Shown here: one piece after another, positions 26,018 to 50,537 of the stretch
Layout: each line of letters begins with the position of its first letter
Numbering within the stretch: position 1 is the first letter of the stretch
Source: Epithemia pelagica
Lineage: Eukaryota > Protista > Bacillariophyta
Direction: 5' to 3'
Length of the DNA: 64,000 nucleotides
Assembly: GCA_946965045.2 (NCBI GenBank)
Contig: OX337229.1
Location: 1,984,001-2,048,000 of the forward strand
Notes under the pieces: generated by a model
What the model was told of the DNA's origin: nothing
Databases searched by the model: none
The model's input: only the letters and a program-made list of their open reading frames with translations
Program-made: the position numbers and the translations under genes

Positions 26018-27547
26018 TCACACTTTTCGAAGCAAAGCGGTTACGCCATTCTTCAGCAAGACAACGGCGGAGACACTTCCAATAATGGCGGAAAGGCGTA
26101 TTGCCCATGTACTAAAAGCGGAATTCGATGCTGCACTTTCGTCAAGGGAAAATTCATTGGGATCTTGCCACAGAACACCTGGACCACCGACCAGGGATCG
26201 AATGATTGTAAATCCCAATGGCTTGAGATCCGCTTCAATTTGTTTCAACACATTGCCGTCCTTCTTGCTCGACTCTTTGTCGTTGGGGATATCCGTCTCG
26301 AAGGACGGATGTAGGAGCACCAAGGCACACCCTCCTCCTCCAGCACCCGTCAATTTGGCAGCCGCAACAGATGCATATTTGGTTCGAATCAATTGGTCAA
26401 TCTCATCGAGTCGAGGATGAGAGACACTTAAGGCCCGCAGACAATCTTGATTCAATCGCACCAATTCCAAAAAGGCCGTCCCAGTACTCTCGGACGATGA
26501 CGACGCCAAACTGGTGAGCAAGTCTCGAACTTCAGTCACCAGAGCACCCATGGCATCGAGCAAAGGTTCCATGACAGACGTATGACGATTGTAGAGTGTC
26601 CGTACACCGGCAACCAAGGCTTTGGTGGAACGAGGAACGTGAGTATGAACTAAAAGCAATTGCAGTGTTGGAAAGGATGACAAACTTGTCATGTTGCTGT
26701 CCGAGACTTGTTTTCGCTCCTGTTCCGTGAGATCTTTAGCAGAATTGTTGGTGATCTTTGTCTTTGAATGTATATCTTTGGTGTACCACAAGGCTCCTCC
26801 ATGTGTTGACACCGCATTGTCGAGACCCGACGGTGTTCCATGCAACAAGATTTCTGACGCATAGGCGAACTTGTTGATTTCCTGGAGATCGGAAGCAGCT
26901 GGTTGGGTAGTTTTGGAGGACTCTGTGTTCTCGGTATTCAGGGAACGTTGTTTCCATCGAATCAGAGTTGCTACGAGGGCGACACTAAAGGCAGCCGATG
27001 ATCCGAGGCCAGCACCAACCGGTAAATCTTTCGATCGAACCCATAGTTTCAAGTCAATTGGCATTCGTGGTGTCCCTGGTTCATCCACTGTTTTCCAGTA
27101 CCACGCTGGAGCTAGCTGGACCAGCAAAAACAACACAGGTACTATAGGAAGCAAGGACAGATCCAACGGGGACGACATAACTTCCATTTCTCCGCTTCTA
27201 AGCGCTTTTTGCATGAAAGATTCGATTTGAGTGACCATGTCAGGAGAGGGAGGCATAGGCAATTGTTGCAAAAGCGATGAAGAAATACAGGTCTTGGTGA
27301 TTTTAACAAAAAGGCCCAAGTCAGCCATTATGATATGAATCGTTTGTGATTCATTGGTGATTGAAGAGTCGGCATAAGGCGTCAGGAGAACCGAAATACG
27401 TAGATCTGATAGGGCTGCCGCAATGGCAGGTTTTCCATACACAACTGAATGTTCTCCAAACAAAATCACTTTTCCAGGGGCCGACGCTGCCACTGAGAAC
27501 TCATTTACCTCCACTGGTGGTGTACTTTTGAAAAACGAGTTCGCCAT
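26018..27547 (-). CDS. MVK: Mevalonate kinase (GHMP kinase) with hydrophobic C-terminal tail
   Basis: SAPGKVILFGEHSVVYG, LPVGAGLGSSAA, HGTPSGLDN, KLTGAGGGGC. Confidence 0.95.
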   Translation of the reverse strand: MANSFFKSTPPVEVNEFSVAASAPGKVILFGEHSVVYGKPAIAAALSDLRISVLLTPYADSSITNESQTIHIIMADLGLFVKITKTCISSSLLQQLPMPPSPDMVTQIESFMQKALRSGEMEVMSSPLDLSLLPIVPVLFLLVQLAPAWYWKTVDEPGTPRMPIDLKLWVRSKDLPVGAGLGSSAAFSVALVATLIRWKQRSLNTENTESSKTTQPAASDLQEINKFAYASEILLHGTPSGLDNAVSTHGGALWYTKDIHSKTKITNNSAKDLTEQERKQVSDSNMTSLSSFPTLQLLLVHTHVPRSTKALVAGVRTLYNRHTSVMEPLLDAMGALVTEVRDLLTSLASSSSESTGTAFLELVRLNQDCLRALSVSHPRLDEIDQLIRTKYASVAAAKLTGAGGGGCALVLLHPSFETDIPNDKESSKKDGNVLKQIEADLKPLGFTIIRSLVGGPGVLWQDPNEFSLDESAASNSAFSTWAIRLSAIIGSVSAVVLLKNGVTALLRKV

Positions 27548-45507: not shown

Positions 45508-45710
45508 GTCGTGTTCGACATTTGACAGCATGCATATTGCATATCCAAGCCCTCGATCTCCGTGATTGTCCATTTATGTTTATGTGTTTTGCAGCTGTCT
45601 TAAATCCTATCAAACTGGATAAAGGTAATATCGTTTATCGTTTTGTTAAACTGTATGTACTGGAGTAACTATAAACACGTGTAGCTTGAGAAGCAAAGCA
45701 CTGAGCATGT

Positions 45711-46283
45711 TTAGAAGGAAAACATGGGCTTCTTGGCAGGCTTCATGTCAGCAAGGGTCTTTTCGGCAAAATCGGCATGACCGGCAGCGTCGGCAAGATC
45801 CTGGTAGACGGCCTGACAGGTACCCTTGGCATCCAAAACGTAGGTGACGCGTCCAGGGAGCAATCCAAAAGCGGCACGAGGGACATCAAAGGCAGTTCGG
45901 GTGGCATCACCTTCGTCGGCCAAGACAGAAAAGTTGAGACCCAAATCAGAGGCAAACTTGGACTTGGAGTCAACATCCTGTCCCGAGATACCAACGACTT
46001 CGGCGCCGTACGAGGAACGGATGGAGGCGACGCGTTCATTGAACTTTTCGGCCTGCACCGTGCAACCAGGGGACGAGTCGGCAGGGTAAAAGAACACAAC
46101 CAAAGGCTTCTTGATTTGGGATCGCTTGATAGTCTTTCCGTTTTGGTCCGTAAGGGCAAAGTCAGGAGCCACTTCACCGACGGCCAAATTCAATGCCGAC
46201 GAGGAGGCGGATCGTGGAGCGATGGGCGCAAAGGCGTCAGCCACGGAAGCGAGAAGAGCGACGAATGTAACAGCAAACTTCAT
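45711..46283 (-). CDS. PRXQ: Plastid peroxiredoxin Q / BCP
   Basis: [20 protein letters not shown] bipartite presequence; [26 protein letters not shown]. Confidence 0.93.
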
Positions 46284-46664
46284 GATGATATCAGTTCTTC
46301 GTTGAGTGGAAGAGTGTATTTTTTATGATTGAATTGAGAAAGAGATCGTTGCTTGCAATGGCGTGTGAAGGAGGTGGCCAATGGCCAAGCTCATCAGCAA
46401 CAACATTGATGACGAAACTGAATTTGTGAGGAATGAGTCAGTGAGTCCAGGATCCATCACGAATCACGAATATCTTTGCTCGAGAAAGAAATCCATCGAT
46501 TGTGTCGCTTTTGGAGCGTGGCTAAGTCGCTCTTATTCTCGTACGTTTCTTTGGGCGTCCGTGGAGCATTTCTTGCATCCTCAACTTCGTCTTGGCACTT
46601 CGGTTCTCTTTTCTTTCGACGTGCATGGACCCTTGTCACACGGGGTCCTCTTTGATGGTGTGTC

Positions 46665-48475
46665 ATGTTTACGAGAGTCCTATCAATGCTGTATCTAGCT
46701 ACAAGATCGACTTGTTTCTTATTCCAAAAGAGAGCAGTTCATTTCCCAAGAAAATCACAACACTGTCGGTATTGGACCATGCCTACTCAATGCGCCTTGT
46801 CATCGTCGGCGACACAGAACGCAGTCGGAGACAGTGCTTATGGGACCAATATGAATCAGGAAGATATGATGGAGAGTGACCAGCTCGTTGCGGTGGATGA
46901 AAATGATGTTCTGGTTCCAAATGTTGAGCTGTCGAAGCGAGCTGGACACACTTTTGATATGAAGAATCCTAGAGCAACACTGCATCGTGCCTTTTCCTTC
47001 TTTTTGTTCGATCGAAACAACAAAATGCTTCTCACGCAGCGAGCTAGCTCGAAGATCACCTTTCCTAGCGTCTGGACCAACACATGCTGCAGTCACCCAC
47101 TATATGGAATGAAGCCGAATGAAGTCGACGTGGTACCAGATGCCTATCCCCGATTTCCAGGAATCAAACAAGCGTCGTTACGCAAACTTCGACACGAACT
47201 TGGTCTGAATCTCCTTGACTACATTGACGGAAACAATCTAGATGAGGAAATAAAGTTCCTTACCAGATTCCATTATTGGGCTTCCGACACAATTACCTAT
47301 GGTGCCGAAACTCCTTGGGGAGAGCATGAGGTGGATTACATTTTGTTCTGCAAAATTCTGCAGGATGGCAGTGATATCTCCATTACTCCAAATCCAGATG
47401 AAGTGTCGGTGCACATGTTTGTTTCTATCGACGAACTCAAGACAATGATGACCGATCCAGATTTGCTGTGGTCTCCTTGGTTCCGTGGCATTATGGACCG
47501 CGGAGCCTTTGATTGGTGGGACGATATGGAGGGAAGTTTGGCGGGAAAATACACCAATGAACATGTCGCATTCTTCGATCCACCTCCAGCACATTATGCA
47601 TCCTACAATTTGCCTGCACATGGACGATTGACAGGGGTCTTGTCGGCAAAGCATAGCACACCTCCAGCGGTTGATACTGGATTCTTGGATGCGAAATCAG
47701 CAGCCGCATTGGACGAAGAACTCATGTCCACACCAGGCTTTTCGTTGGAGCAATTGATGGAACTGGCAGGTTTGTCCGTCGCTGAAGCAGTCTATACGGT
47801 CATCCAAGACGACCAAAAATCGTCAAAGGCATCGGACGACGACTCCAAGCCACAGATTTTGTGCGTTTGTGGCCCTGGAAACAACGGGGGAGATGGTTTG
47901 GTGGCAGCTCGTCACTTGAAGCTCTTTGGGTATGATTCAGCCGTAGTGTATCCCAAGCGAAGCGGACGGCAACCACATTACACCAATCTCGTTCAACAAT
48001 GTCTTGATTTGGATATACCCGTCCTTGATGAAATGCCGTCCAATTTCAGCAACTACCGCGTAATTGTGGATGCTATTTTTGGTTTTTCCTTCCAAGGGGA
48101 ACCAAGAGAACCCTTTGCGACGATTCTAAAGCAAATTCAAACAGCACAAGAAGATGGTTCATCATTGGTCGTGGCGGTAGATGTTCCGTCAGGTGAGTGG
48201 AATGAAGCGCCTCGGATGTACTTTATGGATTTCTGCAACTCTTACTTTTTTCTGACTGACTACGCAAAGGCTGGCATGTAAATGAGGGCGACGTCCTGGG
48301 CACAGGGTACCTTCCAGAGGTTTTGGTAAGTTTGACAGCTCCGAAACTTTCGGCCCAAAACTATCCCAAACGACACTTTGTAGGAGGTCGATTCTTGCCA
48401 CCTTCGTTGGCAAAGAAATACAATGTACGAATGCCACCGTATCCCGGTGTGGCACAAGTTATGGAAGTGAATTGA
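46665..48475 (+). CDS. IDI: Fusion: type-I isopentenyl-diphosphate isomerase + NAD(P)HX epimerase (YjeF_N/NAXE); intron 48193-48269
   Basis: LHRAFS, LTQRA..KITFP..WTNTCCSHP, HELG, WGEHEVDY, SPWF; in the same frame LMELAGLSVA, GPGNNGGDGLVAARH, VDAIFGFSF, DVPSG|W, SLTAPK, GGRFLP. Confidence 0.92.
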
Positions 48476-48980
48476 ACCGAGAGACACATGTAGTCAAGGC
48501 CAGCAGTAGGAACTTGCTTCTAAACCTCTGGAGTTTGAGAATTCTCGAACTCAATATCACGACGAGTAACAACTCATTCAGAAAACCAATCACCGTAACA
48601 TGCATCTCTGGAAAGAAAAAAGCAGTGTGTGTCTGGAAGGCCATCTTCTTGACTTTTTCAATTCATAAAGTCATTGTAAGTTACGTGGATAGAGAGACAA
48701 TTTGTTGCATCGATGATTGAAAACTCTAGGTAGGTGTTCTTGTACTCATTCGCTGACTTGAGGAGAATGAATCGACTAGGTAGCTACCTACTCTTAGCGT
48801 TGAAATGAAAGATTATGCACCCCTAGCATTTTATTAGTCATGTGGGGACGCTGGAGTGTAGGTTCGCGTGACAGATTCCGAATTCCGATGAGATATCTTG
48901 AGATCTTGACACGACAAAGGGAGGATCTTTCTCATATCCGTACTCCCATCTGAAATCTGAAAGGCAGATAGCACGCAACG

Positions 48981-50537
48981 ATGAGGACTGAACGATGGAA
49001 AGGAGCTCTTCTGTTTGCTTGTCATGTCCTGCTCGCGAAGCATGTTTCGTGTTTAGCGGTTCCACTCGATCCTGGTAGCATTCGTGTCATTTCGACCAAC
49101 AAAAACAGTGGAAGTGGTAAGATATTCACTTTCCAGCAAAACGACAGTGCCGACGACGTCCATGCAAGCGTTGGTGGACCTATGACCGGAACATCCCGTT
49201 TCGACAAATCTCTCGGCAGTATTCTTCCTGCTATGGCCTCTGGTTTGCGATCGACCTTTCTTCCCTCGGGATACCCGTCGAAAATCCCCCATGGATATTT
49301 GCGCTATGCCGTATGGAGTTGGATCCAAGATTTATCGACGCAATTGCGGGGCGTCCTTGCGACTCAAAAAGTACTGGAAGGAGTGGGAGTGGGTCGTCCA
49401 GGGGCTACCGCCCTTTCAGCCATGCTCAACTTTTTGGTCCGTGATGGCTGTGGCATGGCGGCTACCTTGTTGTTCACGGCTTCTGCAGCCAGTCGGTTTC
49501 AAAGTGACGTCAAGAGATGGAGGCTGTTTGCCGACATTATGGTGGACATTGGAATCACCTTGGAAGTTGCGGCAGCGCAAGTGCCACAGCGATTTTTCCT
49601 TCCAGTAAGACATTTTGTCTCGATTTGATCTGTAGACGTTATTGCTGAACTCAAATAATGTTCTGGATGTTTTGCTGTTGCTTTGGGACAGATGATTTGT
49701 GTTGGTAACATGTGCAAAGCCATGTGTGGTGTTGCGGCAGGATCAGTTGGTGGTGCCATTAATCTCTACTGGGCTGCACAAGGTACAGACATATCGGACA
49801 TTAGTGCCAAGTTTGGGGCACAGCAAACAGTCACGGCCAGTTTGGGTCTCATCGCTGCTGCTCTCCTGGCAAAATCTGTCTCCAATGTTCCGGCAACTAC
49901 TGTCTGGATGCTGTACTCTGGACTGACAGTGTTACATATTTTTGCCAATGTTCAATGTATGAGAATACTCGAGTTTCATACCTTCAATGCGGCTCGACTA
50001 AGGATGATATTCCACGAATTCTGGAATCAACATTCCATGGACGAAAGCAACCCCACCAATGCTACGGTTACTGTTGCTTCTCCATCCAAGATTGCATCAC
50101 GAGAGCCATTGATCTTCCTTCCTGGATTTGTTTCACAACTTGGAAAAGGCCCCAGCATCTCGTTCGGAGTTCCGTTTAACGATGTGGTGGATGCAATGAA
50201 AACCCAACCTAATGTGGAACTTCTCAGTCGACCATACTGGCTTTCCGTGTCGGAACGAAAGAGCCCGTGGATGGGCTCGAAACACGTCATCAAGGTGGCG
50301 TTGAACGCGCGCACCACACCCCGCCAACAGATTCAAGCATACTTTGATGCTCTTGTCCTTCGGGAGAAGATAAAGCACCAAGGAAATGAACTTTCTCTTG
50401 CACGAGAGGAACTGGACGGAGGCCAAAGCCCACCTTGGTATTCGTTTTCTAAATCATGTCAAGAAGCTGGATGGAATCTAGACATTAGCAGTCTGGCTAG
50501 CGAAGGTTATGAAGTTACTGTTGACTTGGGAACTTGA
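48981..50537 (+). CDS. RUS1/DUF647 (root UV-B sensitive-like) protein (intron 49605-49691)
   Basis: FLPSGYP, YLRY..W, GVLAT..VLEGVGVG, DVKRWRLFAD, GNMCKAMCGVA. Confidence 0.88.

Follow-up and report, generated by a model that had tools for sequence, protein, structure and literature searches.

Does one reading frame of a diatom genome encode two enzymes of unrelated pathways as a single protein, and, if so, where did it come from and what does it change? The question is raised by positions 46,665 to 48,475 of a 64,000-nt stretch of Epithemia pelagica DNA (contig OX337229.1, positions 1,984,001 to 2,048,000, forward strand; hereafter, the window, whose numbering is used throughout). There, a sequence-only reading had noted a type-I isopentenyl diphosphate (IPP) isomerase (IDI) in frame with an NAD(P)HX epimerase (NAXE). 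The locus is a real nuclear IDI-NAXE fusion gene of an Epithemia-type (Rhopalodiales) raphid pennate diatom, and we consider it probable that its product consists of two independent modules under a shared promoter and with a shared address.

The fused reading frame and its transcript

Exon 1 is contained in an open reading frame of 538 aa on the + strand (46665..48281), and the spliced gene model (46665-48192 joined to 48270-48475) yields a 577-aa protein. In the exon-1 part (to 48191), the Pfam scan detected NUDIX at residues 106-272 (38.5 bits) and YjeF_N (PF03853) at residues 362-509 (100.5 bits; cut-off, 24.9). Two NCBIfam models also exceeded their cut-offs: the IPP_isom_1 equivalog (TIGR02150; residues 75-276; 141.8 bits; cut-off, 105.8) and yjeF_nterm / NAD(P)H-hydrate epimerase (TIGR00197; residues 344-509; 117 bits; cut-off, 88.6). 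The scores for PF03853 and TIGR00197 are those of the exon-1 part of the epimerase.

The IDI domain (aa 58-327; 46836..47645, +), including a diatom-specific C-terminal tail (aa 291-327), aligned over residues 66-289 with human IDI1 (2dho_A, E 6e-36), with HRAFS, TNTCCSHP (47076-47099) and WGEHE(V/I)DY (WGEHEVDY, at 47316-47339) conserved. The Cys of TNTCCSHP, the Glu of WGEHExDY and the His of HRAFS were identical to those of the human enzyme; we presume these residues to be catalytic, as is established for the E. coli and human IDI.

The exon-1 part of the epimerase (aa 337-509 and the first base of a Gly codon; 47673..48192, +) aligned over residues 338-492 with mouse AIBP/NAXE (2dg2_A, E 3e-40), with CGPGNNGGDGLV, ARHLKLFGY and VDAIFGFSF conserved, as were GPGNNGGDG and DAIFGFSF. 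This alignment left exon 1 after VDVPSG, at GTGAGT, and resumed exactly at that point in exon 2 (48270..48475, +), the 67 full codons of which matched residues 194-253 of the mouse AIBP chain (E 6e-13). Exon 2 supplies the C-terminal 68 residues of NAXE, up to the TGA stop codon at 48473-48475. Its SLTAPK aligned with SLTAPK of mouse AIBP, and the Lys of this motif (codon 48344-48346) lies 42 residues from the C-terminus. The role of the invariant NAXE Lys is taken from PMC5938422, and the mutagenic primer sequence given there suggests that the SLTAPK Lys corresponds to E. coli K192. Because the catalytic Lys is in exon 2, splicing is required for an active epimerase. Thus, with both NCBIfam models above their cut-offs and all motifs intact, the gene encodes a complete type-I IDI joined in frame to a complete NAXE, as the sequence-only reading had proposed. 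Both catalytic centers being intact by motif, two activities would be expected from one protein.

Four sequencing runs, all from one study and none recorded as RNA, contain this stretch (X1-X4). The X1-X3 contigs were 3.5-10 kb long and retained the intron, and these runs are therefore genomic. X4 consisted of gene-sized contigs. A single 2027-nt contig of X4 was composed of 46608-48190 and 48268-48711, skipped 77 nt (GT..AG) and spanned the presequence, IDI, linker and NAXE; a separate 608-nt contig (45677-46284) covered a neighboring peroxiredoxin gene, and nothing covered the intergenic interval 46302-46535. From the gene-sized contigs and the removed intron, we infer that X4 is a transcriptome. 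Given that X4 is RNA, IDI-NAXE is transcribed as one spliced mRNA (46608..48711, +), with a 5′ untranslated region of about 57 nt and a 3′ untranslated region of about 236 nt (ends approximate). The sequence-only reading had entertained two separate mRNAs as a possible outcome; X4 has one spliced contig across both domains. The spliced last exon of that reading was likewise recovered: the 77-nt intron (48193..48269, +; GT..AG, phase 1) was absent from the X4 contig and kept in X1-X3, and exon 2 continues the AIBP alignment.

At 47416 the window has T, whereas all four runs have A, a difference that exchanges Met251 and Lys. Lys is found at position 251 in the related contig L001 (see below), in Epithemia clementina and in stand-alone IDIs, and the window Met251 is therefore a minority allele or a consensus error. 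Seven more single-base differences between the runs and the window were observed over 45600-49100.

Distribution, joint and origin of the fusion

A word-based search was made with the whole exon-1 protein (best 120 of 2256 matches). Among the matches listed, PF00293 and PF03853 occurred together in three proteins only: the window protein (P0001), P0002 of an ENA diatom contig (L001; 73% identity to the window protein) and P0003, "hypothetical protein ACA910_013505" of E. clementina (75% identity). The same three fusions were recovered among the best 120 matches when the NAXE region was searched alone. In an exhaustive HMMER (phmmer) search of 1.84 billion 50%-identity representatives, only one cluster, the query's own, spanned both domains. 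All other matches covered residues ~55-335 only or ~330-509 only, and the long or two-stretch matches were IDI-squalene synthase (IDI-SQS), Steroid_dh-IDI, NAXE-5-formyltetrahydrofolate (5-formyl-THF) cyclo-ligase, NAXE-2-hydroxyacid dehydrogenase or single-domain proteins. Because a fusion with about 40% identity per half would rank near the top, this absence is meaningful among sequenced data. Within these searches, IDI-NAXE was found only in a small group of Epithemia-type diatoms, to which it appears confined; with one cluster in 1.84 billion representatives, it is not the standard stramenopile architecture that the sequence-only reading had allowed for. The literature on NAXE or YjeF with isopentenyl yielded no description of an IDI-NAXE fusion, in agreement with the same reading, and the E. 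clementina genome paper mentions neither IDI nor NAXE. IDI-NAXE is apparently an undescribed domain architecture.

Other fusions of either enzyme were seen among the database proteins (P0209, P0274, P0369 and P0262). They comprised a glyoxalase/VOC-NAXE (P0209, 520 aa), a NAXE-5-formyl-THF cyclo-ligase (633 aa), a NAXE-D-2-hydroxyacid dehydrogenase (813 aa) and a steroid-5-alpha-reductase-like-IDI (643 aa).

An apparent fusion of this kind could arise from mis-assembly, or from read-through between adjacent genes when a sequencing error deletes a stop codon. Nothing specific speaks for either, apart from the common origin of the runs in one study, and the same fusion is present in three independent assemblies of three species. 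The 10-kb genomic contigs and the RNA contig both match the window at the joint and show no indels there. Moreover, the IDI part is complete to its natural end, the NAXE part starts from its natural beginning, and no spare intergenic DNA lies between them. Mis-assembly was rejected on the concordance of the three assemblies with the genomic and RNA contigs, and an artefact of either kind is hardly credible.

Where exactly do the two enzymes meet? The sequence-only reading had placed a linker of ~45 aa between them, most of which proved to be the C-terminal tail of IDI. Stand-alone diatom IDIs (Amphora P0005, P0004, P0006-P0020, Mayamaea P0051 and others) share the tail WSPWFRGIMDRGxxDWWxDLxGSLxGKYTNxxVxFFDPPxEHxAxYNLPxHxRxTGVL and stop 1-38 residues (typically about 9) past TGVL; residues 291-327 of the fusion, ending in FFDPPPAHYASYNLPAHGRLTGVLS, are this conserved tail. 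The conserved part of stand-alone diatom NAXEs starts at DTG(Y/F)LDAKSAAALDEELMSTPGF. The only segment shared with neither parent is AKHSTPPAV (aa 328-336; 47646..47672, +), which gives a true linker of about 9 residues. Its sequence and length differ among the three fusions, always in frame.

The joint was also viewed in an AlphaFold2 model of the natural full-length E. clementina protein (P0003; alignment of 38 relatives), which stands in for the window protein, the window exons having been searched separately. The model had a mean predicted local distance difference test (pLDDT) score of 90.6 and a predicted template modeling (pTM) score of 0.61. The sole internal stretch with pLDDT <50 was the linker (residues 280-290), and the IDI tail was of high confidence. 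These values would fit two well-folded domains that are joined by a short, flexible tether and whose orientation to each other is not confidently predicted.

A locus of this form could nevertheless yield two proteins, a free IDI and a free NAXE, through an internal start of transcription or translation or through proteolysis of the linker, so that the fusion would be a shared transcription unit only. The linker is exposed in the P0003 model, and contigs are blind to transcript starts and rare isoforms. In addition, E. clementina has a Met four residues ahead of the NAXE block (DMYDVGFLD), similar to how short stand-alone NAXEs begin (MDTGYLD), a similarity suggesting that the joint lies just upstream of a former short-form start codon. 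Set against these points, there is no Met in or near the linker of the window or of L001, indels have not closed the frame at the joint in any of the three species, and one RNA contig of uniform assembled depth crosses the joint. We regard separate products as improbable and a single IDI-NAXE polypeptide as the better reading.

The two halves of the fusion gave concordant phylogenies. In the IDI tree, the three fusions were monophyletic (100/98), with the stand-alone metagenomic P0011 as sister (97/90), and fell inside the clade of stand-alone plastid-type diatom IDIs, apart from the IDI-SQS clade (100/99). In the NAXE tree, which included P0209, P0274 and P0369, the fusions were again monophyletic (98/92), with the stand-alone Entomoneis NAXE as sister (95/84). 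The inner branching order was the same in both trees: the window, then P0002 with P0003. On L001, which encodes P0002, the fusion likewise faces a peroxiredoxin gene head-to-head and has an intron of 85 nt at the same codon position and phase. Both trees, the shared synteny and the shared intron position show, at the level of phylogeny and gene order, a single origin of the fusion by one event in the ancestor that the three carriers share.

No YjeF_N gene was adjacent to IDI at the loci of Mayamaea (L002), Nitzschia inconspicua (L004), two metagenomic diatoms (L003 and L005) and P0011 (L006), and tblastn found no NAXE-like DNA at L002-L006, with only 740 bp available downstream in L006. An ancestral adjacency of IDI and NAXE followed by read-through, which was considered as a route to the fusion, found no support, NAXE being absent from these five other diatom IDI loci. 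The two genes were therefore probably joined by rearrangement in this lineage.

Comparison of the window with L001 showed saturated synonymous sites (proportion of synonymous differences, pS, 0.63-0.78). The proportion of nonsynonymous differences (pN) was 0.127 in the IDI core, 0.134 in the IDI tail, 0.125 in NAXE exon 1 and 0.091 in NAXE exon 2, as compared with 0.38 in the presequence and 0.47 in the linker, and all indels in the linker and presequence were in frame. The low pN of the catalytic parts and the in-frame indels indicate that both enzymes were kept functional and that the frame was held open across the joint; the pattern shows the signature of strong purifying selection on both domains.

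No second E. clementina NAXE was found among the best 120 matches of either NAXE search (280-890 aa; 94-299 aa). A stand-alone NAXE was present in the searches for each of Fistulifera, Seminavis, Nitzschia inconspicua, Skeletonema, Thalassiosira and Mayamaea. This suggests that E. clementina has no NAXE besides the fusion.

Targeting, neighboring genes and likely consequences

The N-terminus of the fusion, MFTRVLSMLYLATRSTCFLF, had been described as resembling a presequence, and closer comparison agrees. The window presequence (aa 1-57; 46665..46835, +) has a short hydrophobic stretch, MFTRVLSMLYLATRSTC/FLF (STC/FLF; the slash marks the site), followed by a basic, S/T-rich region with a single acidic residue. 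The L001 presequence reads MFHTFRILLLMLVHAQRSIRC/FLL, and its frame and C/FL site are conserved with those of the window. The presequences of the stand-alone orthologues are 43-144 residues long, with a hydrophobic start, a small-residue/Phe site (TAA/FSQ, ITA/FSH, LRA/FAP), few acidic and many basic residues, and their A/F (ASAFAP-like) sites are at the position that matches C/FL of the fusion. By these features the stand-alone pattern is that of a predicted diatom bipartite plastid signal, and the fusion N-terminus is probably a bipartite plastid-targeting signal as well. P. tricornutum is reported to have a predicted plastid IDI (Phatr3_J12533) beside its cytosolic IDI-SQS (bioRxiv 10.64898/2025.12.05.692597).

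The second ATG at 46779 pointed out in the sequence-only reading is in frame (codon 39; 46779..46781, +) and is a candidate start for a form without signal peptide. In both the window and L001, the corresponding Met precedes the mature IDI domain by 19-20 residues, and 14 of 20 stand-alone IDIs have an internal Met ≤30 residues from that domain. A shorter form from this ATG is possible, and dual targeting through alternative starts would be plausible. In stand-alone NAXEs and IDIs (e.g., P0131/P0133), a Met just ahead of the mature domain is common, and near-identical entries start at either Met, as would be expected if one gene gave rise to a long (organellar) and a short (cytosolic) form. 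Two further ATGs, at 46625-46627 and 46655-46657, are in another frame and open an upstream reading frame that extends to 46879, beyond both candidate starts; both are inside the RNA contig that begins at 46608.

The history that we propose is as follows. A stand-alone plastid-type IDI gene would have been joined, at its natural C-terminus, to the organism's own NAXE gene, with the joint at the start of the mature epimerase or just ahead of it, and the epimerase would have lost both the N-terminal extension and the C-terminal repeat extension of its stand-alone relatives. The fusion would have arisen once, in the ancestor of the three carriers, and then been retained by selection. Its product would be one chain of about 64 kDa, made up of the presequence, IDI, the roughly 9-residue linker and NAXE, and would most likely run two unrelated reactions side by side, namely the conversion of IPP to dimethylallyl diphosphate (DMAPP) and the epimerization of R- to S-NAD(P)HX. 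The fusion would change regulation and address: NAXE would be expressed from the IDI promoter and would follow the IDI N-terminal signal, most likely into the plastid, and the shorter second-ATG form may remain outside it.

Several points weigh against this account. The RNA nature of X4 is not on record, and its contig is also compatible with extra, shorter transcripts that start inside the gene or with cleavage at the linker. The evidence for a single polypeptide consists of DNA and an RNA contig. The out-of-frame upstream ATGs (46625 and 46655) might damp use of the first ATG or redistribute initiation. The best 9-residue Kyte-Doolittle mean in the window presequence is 1.83, a weak value at the low end of the family; the E. 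clementina protein model begins without a presequence, and the plastid address is assigned by resemblance to orthologues.

The sequence-only reading had offered two purposes for the fusion, a coupling of isoprenoid precursor balancing to NAD(P)H damage repair or the sharing of one targeting signal. The second is the better supported, since many stand-alone NAXEs have an N-terminal extension of their own that in the fusion is lost and replaced by IDI, so that NAXE sits behind the IDI presequence. The coupling found no evidence: no metabolite is shared, and NAXE has other, unrelated partners. The flexible linker and the lack of a shared metabolite argue for two independent catalytic modules, and shared expression with shared targeting is most likely the consequence of the fusion.

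The genes around the fusion bear on its regulation and on the question of coupling. Head-to-head with it is a peroxiredoxin gene (AhpC/TSA; 45711..46283, −), which has the diatom plastid signal ASVADA/FAP. About 325 bp separate the peroxiredoxin and fusion transcript contigs; because the pairing is conserved in L001, the two genes may share a bidirectional promoter. In L001, a mevalonate kinase (MVK) homologue (L001:1125-2909, −; best solved-structure matches MVK, E 1.6e-35) adjoins the peroxiredoxin/IDI-NAXE pair. Its window counterpart (26024-27514, −) is 52% identical and lies about 19 kb upstream, apparently split off by transposon insertions. By this gene order, a predicted isoprenoid-pathway gene is loosely linked to IDI in this lineage. 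The five other diatom IDI loci showed no MVK in the vicinity of IDI. Directly downstream of the fusion is a RUS/UVB_sens gene (48981-49628 and 49683-50537, +; PF04884, "vitamin B6 photo-protection and homoeostasis", and PF24160), present as two open reading frames with a probable short intron between them. It was considered as a functional neighbor of NAXE, for which vitamin B6 moonlighting has been proposed, and set aside: the adjacency was not found in the ~6 kb of L001 downstream of the fusion and is probably a coincidence.

Coupling could still have been selected if NAXE cleans plastid NADPH for the NADPH-dependent methylerythritol phosphate (MEP) pathway that feeds IDI, or if it moonlights in isoprenoid or sterol metabolism (compare vertebrate NAXE, the apolipoprotein A-I binding protein). 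The nearby MVK gene in the window and in L001 would suit such a link, as would the retention of the fusion across lineages with saturated synonymous sites and its standing as seemingly the sole NAXE of E. clementina among the matches listed. The best solved-structure match of the NAXE part is, moreover, named apolipoprotein A-I binding protein, and fusions have been taken as evidence of functional ties of NAXE, for which a second function was proposed (PMC5938422). However, IDI uses no nicotinamide cofactor, and the two reactions have no metabolite in common. The linker is short, variable and predicted to be disordered, and the pTM of only 0.61 gives no hint that the domains meet at a fixed interface. 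Glyoxalase/VOC, 5-formyl-THF cyclo-ligase and 2-hydroxyacid dehydrogenase also occur as fusion partners of diatom-like NAXEs, and all other sampled diatoms hold the IDI and NAXE genes apart and non-adjacent. We therefore judge a selected metabolic link to be rather unlikely. That the fusion marks a functional tie of NAXE to isoprenoid/sterol precursor metabolism, with an epimerase that modulates or protects plastid isoprenoid synthesis in these nitrogen-fixing-symbiont-bearing diatoms, is a doubtful proposition; were it true, the tie would be an independent "Rosetta stone" beside that of vertebrate NAXE (AIBP) to apolipoprotein A-I.

Both activities are ordinary and no new chemistry is implied; the gene adds a further two-enzyme fusion to those for which the group is already known. 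It is a new pairing of two well-studied enzymes, each with known and informative fusions (IDI-SQS in diatoms; NAXE-PPOX in plants and NAXE-NAXD in bacteria). It also bears on NAXE moonlighting, for fusion partners have served as an argument for a second NAXE function in vitamin B6 metabolism. Because diatom NAXE has IDI as its partner here but glyoxalase/VOC, 5-formyl-THF cyclo-ligase or a 2-hydroxyacid dehydrogenase in other lineages, it is a promiscuous partner, and single fusions need cautious reading. As a marker, the fusion is a clean synapomorphy of the Epithemia-type lineage; if it is the sole NAXE there, it is also a natural experiment in re-addressing a repair enzyme through a swapped targeting signal.

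Comparison with known forms of the two enzymes

The nearest relatives of the epimerase half are stand-alone diatom NAXEs (Entomoneis P0121, Amphora P0135, Pseudo-nitzschia P0184), which are 61-74% identical to it and of which the Entomoneis protein is sister to the fusion NAXEs. They differ in that many have an N-terminal extension and many have C-terminal WExxYAAYxAEKE repeats, whereas the fusion has neither. Many stand-alone diatom NAXEs of the set P0121, P0122, P0131, P0135, P0184 and P0216 and their like end in one or two of these acidic repeats (W-E-x-x-Y-A-A-Y-x-A-E-K-E), which are absent from the Mayamaea protein and from the fusions. Mouse and human NAXE (AIBP; PDB 2dg2, 2o8n and 3rno) align over the full extent of both exons (E 3e-40 and 6e-13) and share GPGNNGGDG, DAIFGFSF and SLTAPK; the animal protein, in contrast, is single-domain.

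Known NAXE fusions in a comparative-genomics survey were with the dehydratase and with pyridoxamine phosphate oxidase (PPOX) only (PMC5938422). Plant NAXE-PPOX (Arabidopsis At5g49970) and prokaryotic YjeF (NAXE-NAXD) resemble the diatom fusion in that YjeF_N, with its invariant Lys, is part of a two-enzyme polypeptide (PMC5938422). In those proteins NAXE is N-terminal and is joined to a vitamin B6 salvage enzyme or to the NAD(P)HX dehydratase, whereas here NAXE is C-terminal and its partner is IDI. The Pfam/NCBIfam scan of the fusion detected no PNPOx or carbohydrate-kinase domain, and NF007856 scored 37.6 bits against a cut-off of 703.

On the isomerase side, the stand-alone plastid-type diatom IDIs (e.g., Phatr3_J12533; Amphora P0005, Mayamaea P0051, Nitzschia inconspicua P0075 and metagenomic P0011) are 59-68% identical over the IDI part. 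They have the same catalytic motifs, the same tail (FFDPPxEHxAxYNLPxHxRxTGVL) and the same kind of presequence, and the fusion IDIs nest in their clade. The stand-alone proteins stop a few residues past TGVL, whereas the fusion continues with about 250 further NAXE residues.

The closest parallel in architecture is the diatom IDI-SQS (PtIDISQS, Phatr3_EG02290; P0253 and P0263), which also has an N-terminal IDI fused in frame to a second enzyme and is likewise a diatom/stramenopile invention. The Pfam scan found no SQS_PSY in the IDI-NAXE protein. The IDI of IDI-SQS belongs to another clade (100/99) and is 45-49% identical to that of the fusion, and the P. tricornutum IDI-SQS has no predicted transit peptide (bioRxiv 10.64898/2025.12.05.692597). 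Its partner, SQS_PSY, is a later enzyme of the same isoprenoid/sterol route, whereas IDI-NAXE joins unrelated pathways; and IDI-NAXE is restricted to a single small lineage, whereas the IDI-SQS fusion is reported for most other diatoms (PMC6723447).

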